In this document: in pieces, positions 43,141 through 57,039 of the stretch | How the letters are laid out: each line of letters begins with the position of its first letter | Numbering within the stretch: the first letter of the stretch is position 1 | IMG/VR virus record: IMGVR_UViG_3300042367_000228 | Coordinates: 186,001-250,000 of that record | Strand: one strand, 5' to 3' | Length of the DNA: 64,000 nucleotides | Translations under genes and position numbers: made by a program | Notes under the pieces: generated by a model | The model's input: only the letters and a program-made list of their open reading frames with translations | Database searches by the model: none | What the model was told of the DNA's origin: nothing

Positions 43141-43749
43141 TTAACCAACTTTCATTACAAAGTTGATTATAAATCTATTTTTATTAAATCTTGGATTTGA
43201 TGAAGCATGAAATCTATCTGATTCAAAAATTACTGCTCTGTTTCGTTTAGGTGTGACACGTTGATTAAGTGTTAATTGGGTTGGTGGTTGTCCACTAACT
43301 GGATCCCAGAATTCATTAAACAAGAATGTATCGCCGTCTGAATCGTTTACATAGTAAATCATACTGTAATGAGATCCAGTTTTATCATCAGTATGTGGAA
43401 AATTATAATGATCAGCTGATGCATTTGATTGTTTTAATAATAAGTTAACTTTAACTCGATCAACAGAACAAATATCTTTTTCAACGTGTTCACCTGCAGT
43501 AAATACTACTGCTTTAAGTCTTTCAAAATAATCTTTAAACTTAGATTCTTCAGTATATGACGAATTTAATAATGTACAAACAAACTGTCCATAGTCTTCA
43601 CAATTGTCATCTATAACAAATGATACATCACCGTATTGATCAGCTGATGATGTTTTTTCTTTGTATTTGTACATTAATTCAGTTTCAAGTTCATACTGAA
43701 TTTGATTAGCATACATTATTGGTAAAAAATTATCAATTACTTTAATCAT
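43141..43749 (-). CDS. 2OG-Fe(II) oxygenase-like protein
   Basis: PHTD..YYVNDSDGDT..PKRNR...F....FHAS....RFIIN. Confidence 0.75.
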   Translation of the reverse strand: MIKVIDNFLPIMYANQIQYELETELMYKYKEKTSSADQYGDVSFVIDDNCEDYGQFVCTLLNSSYTEESKFKDYFERLKAVVFTAGEHVEKDICSVDRVKVNLLLKQSNASADHYNFPHTDDKTGSHYSMIYYVNDSDGDTFLFNEFWDPVSGQPPTQLTLNQRVTPKRNRAVIFESDRFHASSNPRFNKNRFIINFVMKVG

Positions 43750-44024
43750 TAACCGGTACGTTGAATTAAATGCCAACCAAACTGAGTTTGTACTGGTTTA
43801 CTAAAGTTACCAATGCCTAACGAAAATGCTGCTTCTTCAAATGGTTGAACCATTTGTCCTCGACCAAATGCGCCTAAGTTTCCACCACTTTGACCACTTG
43901 GACATTTACTATTGGTTAATGCTAACGCACCGAAATCTGCACCTTCGTTAACAATTTTATTGTATAAGTCATTTGCTTGTTCTTCAGTTTCTACTAAAAT
44001 GTGTTTTGCTTGAATTGATGTCAT
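43749..44024 (-). CDS. ppiC: Parvulin-type peptidyl-prolyl isomerase
   Basis: AKHILV, SKCPSG..GG.LG.F.RGQMV.PFE.AAF, PVQTQFGWHLI. Confidence 0.92.
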   Translation of the reverse strand: MTSIQAKHILVETEEQANDLYNKIVNEGADFGALALTNSKCPSGQSGGNLGAFGRGQMVQPFEEAAFSLGIGNFSKPVQTQFGWHLIQRTG

Positions 44025-45822: not shown

Positions 45823-45907
45823 TGGAGCCAGGTAGGAGACTCGAACTCCTGATGGGTTTCCCCGACGGATTACAAATCCGTTGCAATGGCCACTATGCGA
45901 ACCTGGC
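45823..45907 (-). tRNA. tRNA-Thr(UGU) with long variable arm
   Basis: GCCAGGT/ACCTGGC-T-CCA; ACGGA-TTTGTAA-TCCGT; variable arm GGG-GAAA-CCC. Confidence 0.8.
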
Positions 45908-46011: not shown

Positions 46012-46315
46012 GTTTAATGGTGTGCTTTTACGCTAAAGACCTGTCTGCGACATCCTAATTAACTCTCGGACATGTTAAGTTTAACTATTAGGAAAAACAT
46101 CCTTAACATTAGGGGGTACCTCCCTCATCCGTTTAATATAGCAATCACTTTAGACTCGTAACAGCCATTAAGGCATATTGCCGGACTCTATATTAACGCA
46201 GTTACATACACTTACAGGTTGCTTTCGCACTGCCGTAAGTTTAAGTATCACTTTAGCAAAGTTTGCGGGTCACTCTTTAAATGATGGCTGCTTATAAGCC
46301 TACATCCCAATAAAC
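46012..46315 (-). ncRNA. 23S rRNA L11-binding domain (H43/H44) mimic with ~238-nt insertion
   Basis: GGATGTAGGCTTATAAGCAGCCATCATTTAAAGAGT ... GCGTAAAAGCACAC closed by GTTTATTGG/CCATTAAAC. Confidence 0.75.
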
Positions 46316-46639
46316 TTATGTTAATGCAATCAATCTATCAATGTTTTGTTCCATTAATAGCTTGATTCTATCTTTATCAAAATTGTTATTTTGTAAACAG
46401 TTTTGATGTTGTAATCTAAACAAAGTTTCTTTTGCTTCGTCATATATTGATAATGCCCATATCTGCGTACCACAAAACCCACTTGCAGCTAACTTGATCA
46501 TTTGCCATCCGTCACCTTTGATAAACGAATGTTTTCGTTCAAGTTCAGGACCAACATATTTTCTTAGAAACTCATGTGTATCTGATATTCTATTTTCATA
46601 GTCTTCATTATACATTACATTTCCATATATTACTAACAT
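46316..46639 (-). CDS. Hypothetical protein
   Basis: 107-aa ORF with AAGG RBS. Confidence 0.6.
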   Translation of the reverse strand: MLVIYGNVMYNEDYENRISDTHEFLRKYVGPELERKHSFIKGDGWQMIKLAASGFCGTQIWALSIYDEAKETLFRLQHQNCLQNNNFDKDRIKLLMEQNIDRLIALT

Positions 46640-46693
46640 TAGAAACCTTTGTTTAAATTGTTAAATGGGGTAACTGCCTTTACGGTAGCATCC

Positions 46694-47344
46694 TTATTTG
46701 TTATATGTTATTTTTCTACCTTTATACCATCCTTCTGGAATATTAGTAGTTTTAGGAATGGATTTATTTTCAATTCCGTTTGTAATCCACATTTTACCAT
46801 ATTGAGAATTTTTATTTCCTTTTTGATGAATAGAACTTTTTTCACCAATAAGTTTCTTAGTATGTTCAGAATGTGTTTTACCATTAAATGTACCAGACCT
46901 ACCTTTTAATGAATCTGATATTTTTTTAGATATTAACGCAGCAAAAACTGGATCTTCTTTTTTGCGATTTTCAAGAGTAATTTTCCCTCGTGCAAAGTTA
47001 TCTTTTACATTAGAAGTATATCCATTATTTCCATACAAATTCTTTTTATTGTTGTTTATATAATCAAAGCCGCCACGACCGCCTATTTTAATATTATAAG
47101 TTCTAGTACTAGCAACAAATGATTCGTTTACTATTTCAGCTTCTTTATCATACATTTCTTTTGAATTATTAAAAACATGCAATATTTGTTTACTAAACTT
47201 TTCAATACCGTATTTTATTTTAGCTCGATTTAAAATCTTACCTGATCCCATATAATCATCATTTATGTCTAATGTTTTATGACAACCTATATAGATTTTA
47301 TTATTAATGATATTTGTAATTTTGTATATTATGTAATAAGTCAT
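46694..47344 (-). CDS. GIY-YIG homing endonuclease (Seg-like) with NUMOD3
   Basis: YIIYKITN.INNKIYIG.H..Y.GSG; TYN.K.GG.GG; GKTHSEHTK. Confidence 0.85.
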   Translation of the reverse strand: MTYYIIYKITNIINNKIYIGCHKTLDINDDYMGSGKILNRAKIKYGIEKFSKQILHVFNNSKEMYDKEAEIVNESFVASTRTYNIKIGGRGGFDYINNNKKNLYGNNGYTSNVKDNFARGKITLENRKKEDPVFAALISKKISDSLKGRSGTFNGKTHSEHTKKLIGEKSSIHQKGNKNSQYGKMWITNGIENKSIPKTTNIPEGWYKGRKITYNK

Positions 47345-47457
47345 GCATTTAGTGTTAGTAAGGTGTTAACACCTTACTAATCCAATTATTCTTTTAGGAT
47401 AATGATTTAACGTGCGGAACTTTTATAAAGCATCCTAAACCACACAAACATACTAAT

Positions 47458-47532
47458 TGGCGTCGCTACGGGGAATTGAACCCCGGTTGCAAGGATGAAA
47501 ACCTTGTGTCCTAACCACTAGACGATAGCGAC
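47458..47532 (-). tRNA. tRNA-Glu(UUC)
   Basis: GTCGCTA/TAGCGAC-G-CCA; CAAGG-TTTTCAT-CCTTG. Confidence 0.92.
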
Positions 47533-47538
47533 ATATAT

Positions 47539-47622
47539 TGGTGGAGATCCCTGGATTCGAACCAGGTGCCCAGAGGGCATGGATTTACAGTCCACTGCAG
47601 TCGCCAATGCCGCTCGACCTCC
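47539..47622 (-). tRNA. tRNA-Tyr(GUA)
   Basis: GGAGGTC/GATCTCC-A-CCA; GTGGA-CTGTAAA-TCCAT; long variable arm. Confidence 0.9.
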
Positions 47623-55421: not shown

Positions 55422-56615
55422 ATGAAAATACAAGAAATTATAAGCGAAGCAATATCAGGTGCTCACTGGATACACGGATTGCACAATGGGTTAAATGATA
55501 TTTTAGAACAACCGTTAGGACTTACATTTAACTTAGAAACTATAAATGGATTTAATGCCATTGCAGTATACCTTAAAGATATGTCCGACGGCAGGATATG
55601 TAGTTTTTATGAGAAAATGCAACCTAGTGATATTATTTACATGTTAGAAGAGATAGTAAAGATAGCACATTATGTTATACAGCAGAAATATGCTAAAGTG
55701 TGCGCGGATGTAAGTGGAACAAACTTTTCTCATATTCAAATTCTACCTCAGTCTAATAATCCAGGAGCCCTCGCCTCGGCTGGTTATGACTATGTAACAT
55801 TCTATGAAACTGATAAGAATGCTTTCCAACATCGAGATATAGATATGCTAAAAGACTTGTTATATAGTACAGAAGCAATGACTGATGTTAACAGAGGATG
55901 GAGTAATGCTGAACAAAAGAATCTATATGTGCCTGTGATAACTGATATGTTTCAAATCGAACCTGCATTTAGAAATTTGAAACTAGGTGATTTTAGTTTA
56001 GCTGAATTCTTCTTAGACACTAAAAACATAGATACTATGGTTCACGAATTAGTACATATTAGACAACACGCACCTCAATCTAGATATAAAACTAAACGAG
56101 TATTTGATAAAGATACTAAACAGCACAAATTGGTTACTAAACAAGGCACTGAATTTAGAAGTAAAGTAGAGCCAAATCAAGAAAAGTTTTATAATGCAAT
56201 TAGAGATTTAGATAAGTCGCCTGAAAACTATAAAATATATAGTTCGTCGTTACAAGAAATACCAGCACATGCGCATGATGCAGCAGTTAGCGTTATACGT
56301 CATTTAGATTTTGCATGGGGCGGTTCGGTTGATGAATATGGCAGAGACGTGTCACATTTAAAATCTCAAGTAAAAGCACTTAAATTGATTATTGCTAATT
56401 TGTCTAATGGACCAACCGCGTTAAAAGATGTTTATGGTCACCCGATTAAAATTAGAAGATTTGAATATTTCAGTAAGACATTTAATCATCCTAACGATAA
56501 AAAGTTATATCCGGTATATAAAAAATTTGTAAAAATAATGAGTCAAGAATTAATCAATTATTACAATTATTGGAATGAAAAACTTATTAACCTTAGTAAA
56601 TCAAATGGTCAATAA
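55422..56615 (+). CDS. Hypothetical protein with HExxH motif and MKIQEIISE leader
   Basis: VHELVHIRQ followed by Y....QEIPAH (zincin-like). Confidence 0.65.
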   Translation: MKIQEIISEAISGAHWIHGLHNGLNDILEQPLGLTFNLETINGFNAIAVYLKDMSDGRICSFYEKMQPSDIIYMLEEIVKIAHYVIQQKYAKVCADVSGTNFSHIQILPQSNNPGALASAGYDYVTFYETDKNAFQHRDIDMLKDLLYSTEAMTDVNRGWSNAEQKNLYVPVITDMFQIEPAFRNLKLGDFSLAEFFLDTKNIDTMVHELVHIRQHAPQSRYKTKRVFDKDTKQHKLVTKQGTEFRSKVEPNQEKFYNAIRDLDKSPENYKIYSSSLQEIPAHAHDAAVSVIRHLDFAWGGSVDEYGRDVSHLKSQVKALKLIIANLSNGPTALKDVYGHPIKIRRFEYFSKTFNHPNDKKLYPVYKKFVKIMSQELINYYNYWNEKLINLSKSNGQ

Positions 56616-56638
56616 AAAAGCTGCCCTAAGGCAGCTTT
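56615..56638. terminator. Intrinsic terminator between tmRNA and convergent CDS
   Basis: AAAAAAGCTGCC-CTAA-GGCAGCTTT. Confidence 0.8.
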
Positions 56639-56641
56639 AGT

Positions 56642-56983
56642 TGTATTTTGGTTAATAAGGCATACATGCCCCAGAGGGGTAGGTTATTAAGCTACCATGT
56701 CAGCTGCTTCCAAAGAGAAGTCAACTGTCATATACTCGAATTTAGATGCTTTTGCGTCTATAAGTTTTGCGCTGTTTAGGACAGTCACCTCACCTGTTGC
56801 CGTCTCCATTATCTCACCAAGTCGAATCCAATTCATCCCCATTATAAAACACACTATCACTTCCCATTTGAGGGGCAGGAAGTCTACGGCTGTTGCCCCA
56901 CTCCGATACCTCTAATGTGTTTTATGGTGGAGATGTGGGGTTTCGAACCCCAGTGTTTGATGCCGTCACTTTGAAGGAATTAC
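56642..56983 (-). ncRNA. ssrA: Permuted two-piece tmRNA
   Basis: Acceptor piece ends GGGGTTCGAAACCCCACATCTCCACCA (56925); coding piece starts GGGGATGAATTGGATTCGAC (56840); G3.U70 pair; tag frame 56755-56687 AKASKFEYMTVDFSLEAADMVA followed by two TAA stops. Confidence 0.88.
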
Positions 56984-57039
56984 AACAATAATAAACACAC
57001 TAAAATATTTAATGTGCTTATTATTGTTAACTTGTGCAT

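Follow-up and report, generated by a model that had tools for sequence, protein, structure and literature searches.

Organization of the locus

The window analyzed here, a 64-kb stretch of IMG/VR DNA from a giant phage of lake water, carries on its minus strand a 304-nt element that resembles, in two separated halves, the L11-binding, GTPase-associated domain of 23S rRNA (GAC; H42-H44, nt 1051-1108, the uL11 and thiostrepton site). The DNA surrounding the element is identical to a 372-kb IMG/VR contig. The element is flanked by a 107-aa ORF, the stop codon of which abuts the closing helix of the element (P1), and by a tRNA-Thr gene, and it lies within a same-strand cluster of five tRNA genes, with those for Gly, Pro and Thr downstream and those for Glu and Tyr upstream (47458-47622). 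A permuted tmRNA gene is found 10 kb from the element. The parts of the element and the gene that follows it are listed below.

46315..46012, minus strand: whole element, 304 nt
46308..46315, minus strand: 5' strand of P1, GUUUAUUG, extending the H42-like closing helix beyond G1055
46272..46307, minus strand: 5' half of the GAC mimic, equivalent to 23S rRNA 1055-1090 (assigned from the match to E. coli 23S rRNA and from covariation), with H43 and its 1067 loop, the 1082-1086 turn and G1087-U1090
46038..46271, minus strand: insert, 234 nt in the window copy, with closing stem GACC (46271-46268) / GGUC (46041-46038)
46053..46093, minus strand: sub-helix of the insert, UCCUAAU (46093-46087) / AUUAGGA (46059-46053), assigned from pair changes relative to a distant copy (L056)
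46034..46037, minus strand: UUUA linker from the insert to G1091 (family consensus UUUR)
46020..46033, minus strand: 3' half of the GAC mimic, equivalent to 23S rRNA 1091-1104 (assigned from 1092-1099 covariation and U1090-A1101), with the top of H44 and its GUAAAA loop (1093-1098), A1101 and C1102-C1104
46012..46019, minus strand: 3' strand of P1, CAUUAAAC, complementary to 46315-46308
45823..45907, minus strand: tRNA-Thr, the next gene downstream of the element (ARAGORN and Rfam)

The sequence-only reading from which this analysis started had quoted the element correctly (minus strand, 46315..46012). The two strands of P1 pair with a single U.U mismatch, and the sub-helix of the insert encloses a C-GAGA-G hairpin (46068-46063). 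Single-sequence folding of the element gives an MFE z-score of -1.06 and an MFE structure in which the core is mispaired, and a scan for promoters and terminators at the element returned nothing specific.

Relationship to 23S rRNA

Using the E. coli rrnH operon (16S, 23S and 5S) as the reference rRNA, window positions 46307..46274 were found to share 32 of 34 nucleotides with positions 1055-1088 of E. coli 23S rRNA; in 100 dinucleotide shuffles, no match to this segment with three or fewer mismatches arose. The E. coli 1051-1108 sequence given in the sequence-only reading proved exact when checked against rrnH. The same reading had stated that no other rRNA sequence flanks the element, and this holds for the entire window, a BLAST comparison of which with the E. 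coli rrn operon gives no further rRNA-like match. At the element, Rfam 15 returns neither an rRNA nor any other family at the gathering threshold or at E-values up to 10; the LSU rRNA model in particular gives no match at either the gathering or the E-value threshold, compared with a score of 2619 bits for a true 23S rRNA record (L004). Taken together, these searches and one of 16 other loci of the family described below, run at the gathering threshold, yielded only tRNA, tmRNA and chance noise of the kind seen with miRNA models.

The identity of the element as an LSU rRNA gene or fragment was consequently rejected, since it lacks both the flanking remainder of domain II and a match to the LSU model. 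A tRNA or tmRNA identity was also discarded, as neither ARAGORN nor the Rfam tRNA clan recognizes the element, and so was that of an intron in an rRNA-like exon, given that no intron model matches and that the inserts range from 22 to 365 nt and belong to several unrelated types.

The phage RNA and the 23S rRNA GAC are near-identical in sequence over 1055-1090 and 1091-1104 and have in common their helices, the 1082:1086 pair and the covariation of the 1072.(1092-1099) triple. Unlike the GAC, however, the phage RNA lies outside any rRNA and is phage-encoded among tRNA genes, its closing helix extends no more than about 8 bp below 1055, an insert followed by UUUR is always present between 1090 and 1091, position 1101 is A (rarely G), and A1067 is relaxed.

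Presence in RNA libraries

Metatranscriptome contigs from three runs in two studies extend from 46317 down to 46018, 46018 and 46009, respectively, thereby covering the whole element with its insert, and stop at the 3' end of the element. These are assembled contigs, not reads, and they differ from the window at 7-8 positions, corresponding to a close relative (97-98% identical). Word depth over the element is 44, 29 and 13, in libraries two of which amount to no more than 5 and 3 million letters. A sequence found in an RNA library need not have been transcribed; we read these contigs as transcription because contaminating DNA from a 372-kb phage could not account for such depth in libraries this small, and the element thus appears to be transcribed. 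The insert is uninterrupted in the RNA contigs and no contig contains a joint that skips it, so that there is no sign of the excision that the sequence-only reading had entertained; a minor spliced form is still compatible with these contigs.

In the 97-98% identical relative, 164 nt take the place of the upstream ORF and a GIY-YIG endonuclease gene (46316-47535 in the window), and they are all that separates the element from the tRNA-Tyr gene region upstream.

Members of the family

The search of phage genomes for the split motif proposed in the sequence-only reading identified at least 180 distinct copies in IMG/VR contigs, metagenome-assembled genomes (MAGs) and cultured phages, all with the same boundaries, the same insertion site and both halves conserved, and with covariation in the closing stem of the insert. 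The total of 182 is a lower bound, made up of 98 and 65 distinct viral members, counted after pairing both halves and removing duplicates, and 19 members in MAGs or isolate genomes. Exact-pattern scans of IMG/VR underlie the viral counts, with 14 loci for the 5' half, 56 for a looser 5' pattern, at least 120 for the 3' half with UUUR and at least 119 for a variant 3' half. A scan of MAG and isolate genome contigs gave 120 matches, of which 19, from many phyla, are real and the other 101 are chance matches of an 18-mer. Three matches to the 5' pattern (L141, L144 and L151) were likewise set aside as chance occurrences inside coding sequence.

Searches of phage genomes with blastn located the split architecture in three genomes that do not annotate it, those of Cronobacter phage GAP32, Pectobacterium phage CBB and Xanthomonas phage XaC1. 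Further cultured carriers are Yersinia phages fHe-Yen9-03 and fHe-Yen9-04, Aeromonas phage 4_4572, Pseudomonas phage pf16, Astolliot, Milchi, UNO-G1W1 and Xanthomonas phage XacN1. Paenibacillus phage Pd_22F and several short "phage" records (Staphylococcus, Listeria and E. coli) turned out to contain true 23S rRNA contamination and are not members.

Rfam 15 holds no family matching this RNA, a full-text literature search returned no description of such an RNA, which does not prove that none exists, and a 2017 catalogue of 224 RNA motifs makes no mention of 23S, L11 or GTPase. To our knowledge, no virus-encoded copy of an rRNA functional center has been described, and there is none in the literature searched. 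The element is part of a genuine family of phage non-coding RNAs that appears not to have been described before and whose structural identity is unusually clear.

Conserved architecture and covariation

All members present their parts in a constant order: P1, the 1055-1090 block, an insert placed immediately after U1090, UUUR, the 1091-1104 block and the P1 partner strand. The closing helix comprises 9 bp, namely 1055:1104 and eight pairs outside it; these eight positions accommodate up to six pair types each, and none of 2000 shuffles reached the observed pairing. The UUUR-GCGURNNAGC-ACAY arrangement is found in all 20 true members identified through the 5' pattern alone for which enough sequence is available, indicating that the UUUR linker is not an artefact of the search pattern, and the single ACAU among these 20 is accompanied by A1055, a compensatory change.

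In the main alignment of 148 members, pairs 1057:1081, 1058:1080, 1062:1076, 1063:1075 and 1064:1074 are canonical in 146-148 sequences and show compensatory changes. The first of these is A-U in 141 members and C-G in 7, and 1058:1080 is U-A in 79, G-C in 36, A-U in 24, C-G in 6 and G.U in 3. Pairs swap from G-C to C-G and from C-G to A-U or G-C at 1063:1075 and 1064:1074, the exchanges in H43 spanning AU, UA, GC and CG, and 1065:1073 is canonical in 130/148. The 1082:1086 pair is canonical in 144/148 members (U-A 108, C-G 27, A-U 9); in the earlier set of 87 members, the corresponding figure was 85/87, which none of 2000 shuffles reached. The U1090-A1101 pair is also kept, appearing as U.G in pf16 and UNO-G1W1 (G1101). 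The compensatory changes in the closing helix and the U1090-A1101 pair pointed out in the sequence-only reading are therefore seen across the family. Given 34 members with short inserts and no guidance, RNAalifold returns precisely P1, the two H43 stems, the stem of the insert and the top of H44; 17 of the 20 pairs that it predicts show compensatory double changes.

The covariation extends to a tertiary contact. Position 1072 and the 1092-1099 pair occur as C with C-G in 87 of the 148 aligned members, as U with U-A in 59 and as C with U-A in 2. Phage fHe-Yen9-04 illustrates the exchange, with U1092-A1099 in place of C-G together with U1072. A scan for the U-A form of the 3' half yielded 65 distinct members, 63 of them with U1072, and C1072 is present in 87/87 members with the C-G form; the 3' search pattern left position 1072 unconstrained. 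In work by Conn, Gutell and Draper, 1072.(1092-1099) is reported to be the rRNA base triple by which the H43 loop is locked to H44, and to covary in the same manner among rRNAs. Because 1072.(1092-1099) covaries as the rRNA triple does, the phage RNA is predicted to keep the three-dimensional fold of the GAC rather than its helices alone, and the covariation supports this putative tertiary fold. Moreover, U1060, A1077, A1085 and A1088 are invariant in the 148 members and position 1084 is A in 147; U1060 and A1088 make up the tertiary pair.

Not all of the features that the sequence-only reading drew from the window copy extend to its relatives. The A at position 1061 had been taken for a stabilizing adaptation; U is the most frequent nucleotide there among the 148 members (70), followed by A (52), G (17) and C (9), and even the closest relatives of the window copy differ at it. 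Since it varies freely, A1061 is not a family trait. The U at 1068 is peculiar to the window copy. A1067, which we take to be a key contact for factors and thiostrepton and to be invariant in bacterial rRNA, is replaced by G in 32/148 members (22%).

The principal claim of the sequence-only reading, that the element is a selected structural mimic of the L11-binding domain, is borne out by this family-wide covariation, the base triple included. We conclude that the RNA is almost certainly a structural mimic of the GAC maintained under selection.

The insert and a subclass with a sarcin-ricin-like hairpin

The sequence-only reading had also proposed that 1090 and 1091 are separated by a structured extra domain, and the family bears this out through a constant insertion site and a covarying closing stem. 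The shortest insert in the family has 22 nt and the longest 365 nt; in the 148 aligned members the median is about 155 nt, and the smallest inserts (22-36 nt) are plain hairpins. The first and last 3-4 nt form the closing stem, paired in 82-87 of 87 members at positions 1-3 and in 61/87 at the fourth; all six pair types occur at positions 2-4, and none of 2000 shuffles matched the observed pairing. Several types of insert, always located at the same site, can be distinguished by their closing motifs. The type present in the window is common to four other loci (L007, L044, L103 and L143) and, more distantly, to L056. Between the window type and L056, six of the seven pairs of the 7-bp sub-helix are changed on both sides and the seventh on one side. 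RNAalifold analysis of six window-type sequences mispaired the core and revealed one covarying helix in the insert.

When the inserts were compared with E. coli rRNAs, the only recurring site was 23S rRNA 2654-2665, the sarcin-ricin loop (SRL). A look-alike hairpin, AGUAC-GAGA-GGA(A/G/U), is found on a covarying stem in 15-16 of the 148 members (~10%), all of them with inserts of at least 297 nt. It matches the bulged-G motif and the tetraloop of the SRL, and in most cases UUAA comes next. A looser AGUAC...GGA pattern occurs 26 times in the inserts, against a shuffle mean of 13 and maximum of 24, and is not clearly above shuffles. The C-GAGA-G hairpin of the window copy was examined as an SRL and rejected, since it has no match to the SRL 14-mer with three or fewer substitutions. 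Judged from its sequences, the SRL subclass joins in one putative RNA both of the rRNA elements that form the binding site of the ribosome for translational GTPases.

Genomic context

A tRNA gene is detected by ARAGORN within 500 nt in 99 of the 182 members, in all 99 cases on the same strand. The gap from the 3' end of the upstream tRNA to the first nucleotide of P1 has a median of 5 nt, and many downstream gaps are of 0-12 nt. The element is thus spaced like one more tRNA in the array, which makes its release by tRNA-processing enzymes probable. The remaining 83 members have no tRNA within 500 nt and include those of GAP32, CBB, XaC1 and the fHe-Yen9 phages, where the element lies between small ORFs. 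An all-against-all BLAST of 3863 ORFs located within 6 kb on each side revealed no conserved neighbor protein, the best cluster covering 6 of 117 loci. Likewise, no homolog of L11 (rplK) was found in the cultured carrier phages, which suggests that the partner of the RNA would be a host protein.

Proposed function and alternative explanations

According to the model that we put forward, the element would encode a stable non-coding RNA that shares transcription and processing with the phage tRNAs. This RNA is predicted to fold as a free-standing L11-binding GAC (the top of H42, H43 and H44), in which the 5' strand of H44 accommodates a variable extra domain by way of a three-way junction with the UUUR linker. 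A GAC fragment of about 58 nt suffices for tight binding of uL11 in isolation, and the domain is in addition a contact site for thiostrepton, EF-G and other factors. Given that the rRNA tertiary fold appears to be reproduced, the RNA most likely recruits host uL11, and we regard this binding as probable. Off the ribosome, no RNA partner of uL11 is known to us.

Away from the ribosome, the RNA with uL11 may then stand in for the factor-binding platform as a decoy and capture a protein whose normal docking site is the GAC. The target that we favor would be a ribosome-inactivating host toxin or defense effector directed against the GAC and, in the case of the subclass with an SRL copy, against the SRL as well; we advance this decoy reading tentatively, by analogy. 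Stated more broadly, the RNA could be a miniature replica of the factor-docking site that shields ribosomes from toxins or effectors, or else traps RelA or translational GTPases, a proposal that we likewise consider plausible though short of probable. Phage tRNAs counter host defenses that cleave tRNAs. In addition, the bacterial toxin Tre23 ADP-ribosylates H44 at 1095-1098 and inactivates ribosomes (PMC8661411), and phage PhiTE is reported to evade a host suicide system by RNA mimicry through pseudo-ToxI (PMC3475682).

Several considerations weigh against such a decoy. It would compete with tens of thousands of ribosomes unless its binding were much tighter, and most members, the window copy included, lack the SRL module. 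We know of no antiphage system aimed at the GAC. The relaxation of A1067 to G is easier to reconcile with a role in the fold or in uL11 binding than with exact factor mimicry, against which the constant differences from rRNA (the insert, UUUR and A1101) also speak; a toxin could use these differences to distinguish the decoy from its target.

Activation of RelA requires uL11 at the GAC, and the RNA, together with uL11, might instead titrate uL11 or RelA, leaving infected cells incapable of raising (p)ppGpp, which was the main proposal of the sequence-only reading. The conservation of the uL11-binding fold, the expression of the RNA with translation-related RNAs and the presence of the family in phages of many bacterial phyla, as befits a universal target, are all consistent with such an anti-stringent device. 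We nonetheless consider it unlikely: uL11 is already in ribosomes, with little of it free, RelA also requires A-site tRNA and H38, both absent from the RNA, no link to an alarmone-hydrolase gene is seen nearby, and neither RelA nor uL11 alone would account for the SRL subclass. This subclass, by placing GAC and SRL in one RNA, would fit a sponge or modulator of translational GTPases (EF-G, EF-Tu, IF2, RF3, HflX or BipA) that retunes or stalls host translation. In work by Munishkin and Wool from 1997, oligonucleotides of the GAC and SRL sites reportedly bound EF-G in vitro, which would favor such a sponge. These factors, however, are very abundant and needed by the phage itself, about 90% of the members lack the SRL, A1067 is G in 22% and the RNA lacks the L10-L12 stalk site, by which the factors are recruited, since P1 stops about 8 bp below 1055, so that a sponge appears decidedly unlikely.

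The diversity of the insert raises another prospect, in which the compact GAC, perhaps capped by uL11, would be a nuclease-resistant handle displaying a variable, working insert. The presence of several structural classes, from 22 to 365 nt, at one fixed site, and the fact that these inserts are structured and covarying, with a recognizable SRL module in one class, would be expected of such a scaffold. Yet the core is equally conserved in members in which the insert is a plain hairpin of 22-36 nt, and the surface loops 1066-1073 and 1093-1098, the nucleotides of which we believe to be unnecessary for GAC stability, are strongly conserved, making this an improbable explanation for the family. 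The tight, same-strand spacing inside tRNA arrays would suit a cis-acting element of the tRNA operon, be it a processing, anti-termination or uL11-sensing signal controlling tRNA output. Against it stand the 83 of 182 copies without a tRNA within 500 nt, and we are aware of no tRNA-processing signal that requires an rRNA tertiary domain of 58 nt; we hold a cis-acting role to be very unlikely. Lastly, phage records do contain true rRNA contamination, as in Pd_22F and the short records mentioned above, and the element might by extension be a dead fragment of host rRNA acquired by chance or an assembly contaminant. This explanation is already contradicted by the covariation data, with the same boundaries, insertion site and UUUR recurring alongside compensatory changes in at least 180 diverse sequences, and by the occurrence of the element, free of flanking rRNA, in complete genomes of cultured phages, and we assign it a negligible probability.

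If the decoy reading is true, the RNA would represent a new class of viral counter-measure, adding rRNA mimicry to the anti-defense repertoire of phages, helping to explain the non-tRNA content of phage "tRNA islands" and predicting undiscovered host effectors aimed at the GAC and the SRL. Among its cultured carriers are phages of tractable hosts (Cronobacter, Pectobacterium, Yersinia, Pseudomonas putida, Aeromonas and Xanthomonas), and function is therefore directly testable. More generally, the family points to an undescribed viral way of interfering with host translation or defense.

Comparison with known RNA systems

The autoregulatory leaders of r-proteins, such as the uL1 site on the L11-operon leader and the L10(L12)4 leader, also imitate rRNA sites off the ribosome (PMC10931766). 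They reside in the 5' UTR of the operon that they regulate and bear a loose resemblance to rRNA, whereas the phage RNA is a near-exact version of a whole tertiary domain. The 2024 review of these leaders describes no leader or regulatory RNA that binds uL11 (PMC10931766). An identity as r-protein leader was rejected, since the neighbors of the element are tRNAs or unrelated small ORFs, with no r-protein gene close by, and the cultured carriers have no rplK.

GOLLD and ROOL are large, ornate RNAs of phages and prophages, of unknown function, found near tRNA islands (PMC12286853). Like the phage GAC RNA, they are phage-borne structured RNAs located in or beside tRNA arrays (PMC12286853); the GAC RNA is smaller, and its core is recognizably ribosomal. 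Neither of their Rfam models matches the window element or the 16 other member loci, and this identity was thus rejected. The pseudo-ToxI of PhiTE resembles the role proposed here in that a host RNA is mimicked by a phage-encoded one (PMC3475682). Pseudo-ToxI is reported to copy the repeat of an antitoxin and to be specific to one system, while the phage GAC RNA copies a universal rRNA domain and occurs across many phyla, with an anti-defense role that is conjectural.

The large-insert subclass contains the same two elements as the synthetic SRL and thiostrepton-region RNAs of the "ribosome in pieces" approach, which are reported to bind EF-G (Munishkin and Wool 1997). In the phage RNA these elements are natural and covalently linked by a scaffold of about 300 nt, in ~10% of the family and not in the window copy; under the decoy reading it would constitute a natural "ribosome in pieces". 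For structural work, the family further provides a GAC that is natural, minimal and diversified by evolution, together with an insertion-tolerant site in H44.

Sequence co-variation within the element

In the family alignment of 148 members of the GTPase-associated centre (GAC) mimic, numbered as in E. coli 23S rRNA, position 1056 is either G or A and varies in step with the 1082:1086 pair. G1056 occurs mostly with U-A at 1082:1086 (89 members), whereas with C-G at this pair A1056 is found in 22 members and G1056 in 5. This pattern of substitutions hints at an additional tertiary contact.

Genomic context of the element

The following features of the window, all on the - strand, accompany the element and its surrounding tRNA genes:

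Within 43141-44024: parvulin-type peptidyl-prolyl isomerase ORF (PF13616, E 5e-23)
Within 43141-44024, adjoining the isomerase ORF: 2OG-Fe(II) oxygenase ORF (PF13640)
45798-45771, downstream of the element, between tRNA-Thr and tRNA-Pro: perfect match to the sigma-70 promoter consensus (TTGACA, 16-nt spacer, TATAAT)
46694-47344, in the stretch that separates the element from the tRNA-Glu/Tyr genes: ORF with GIY-YIG and NUMOD3 motifs
56596-57039: permuted tmRNA of the two-piece type, tag peptide AKASKFEYMTVDFSLEAADMVA

Two other loci (L158 and L042) have a tmRNA as well, there adjoining the GAC mimic, and the presence of a tmRNA in the window phage and in these loci indicates that several translation-related RNAs are carried jointly by these phages. 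The GIY-YIG/NUMOD3 ORF is likely a homing endonuclease; a close relative, represented by metatranscriptome contigs, has 164 nt in place of window 46316-47535.

Occurrence and annotation in the phage collection

The searched phage collection contains numerous short "phage" records, as well as some Salmonella contigs, that consist of host rRNA or ribosomal protein DNA (matches H25, H26, H31, H32, H35-H49 and H57-H75), and represent contamination or mislabelling.

Among cultured phages, the published annotation of Pseudomonas phage UNO-G1W1 covers the element with a "hypothetical protein" CDS read from the other strand (L286 967-1074), and that of phage Milchi (H34) likewise has a "hypothetical protein" CDS over it; both calls are probably spurious, overlying an RNA gene. 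In Xanthomonas phage XacN1 (L285 230-880), the gene immediately upstream of the element carries the annotation 2'-5' RNA ligase and is thus an RNA-repair-type neighbour.
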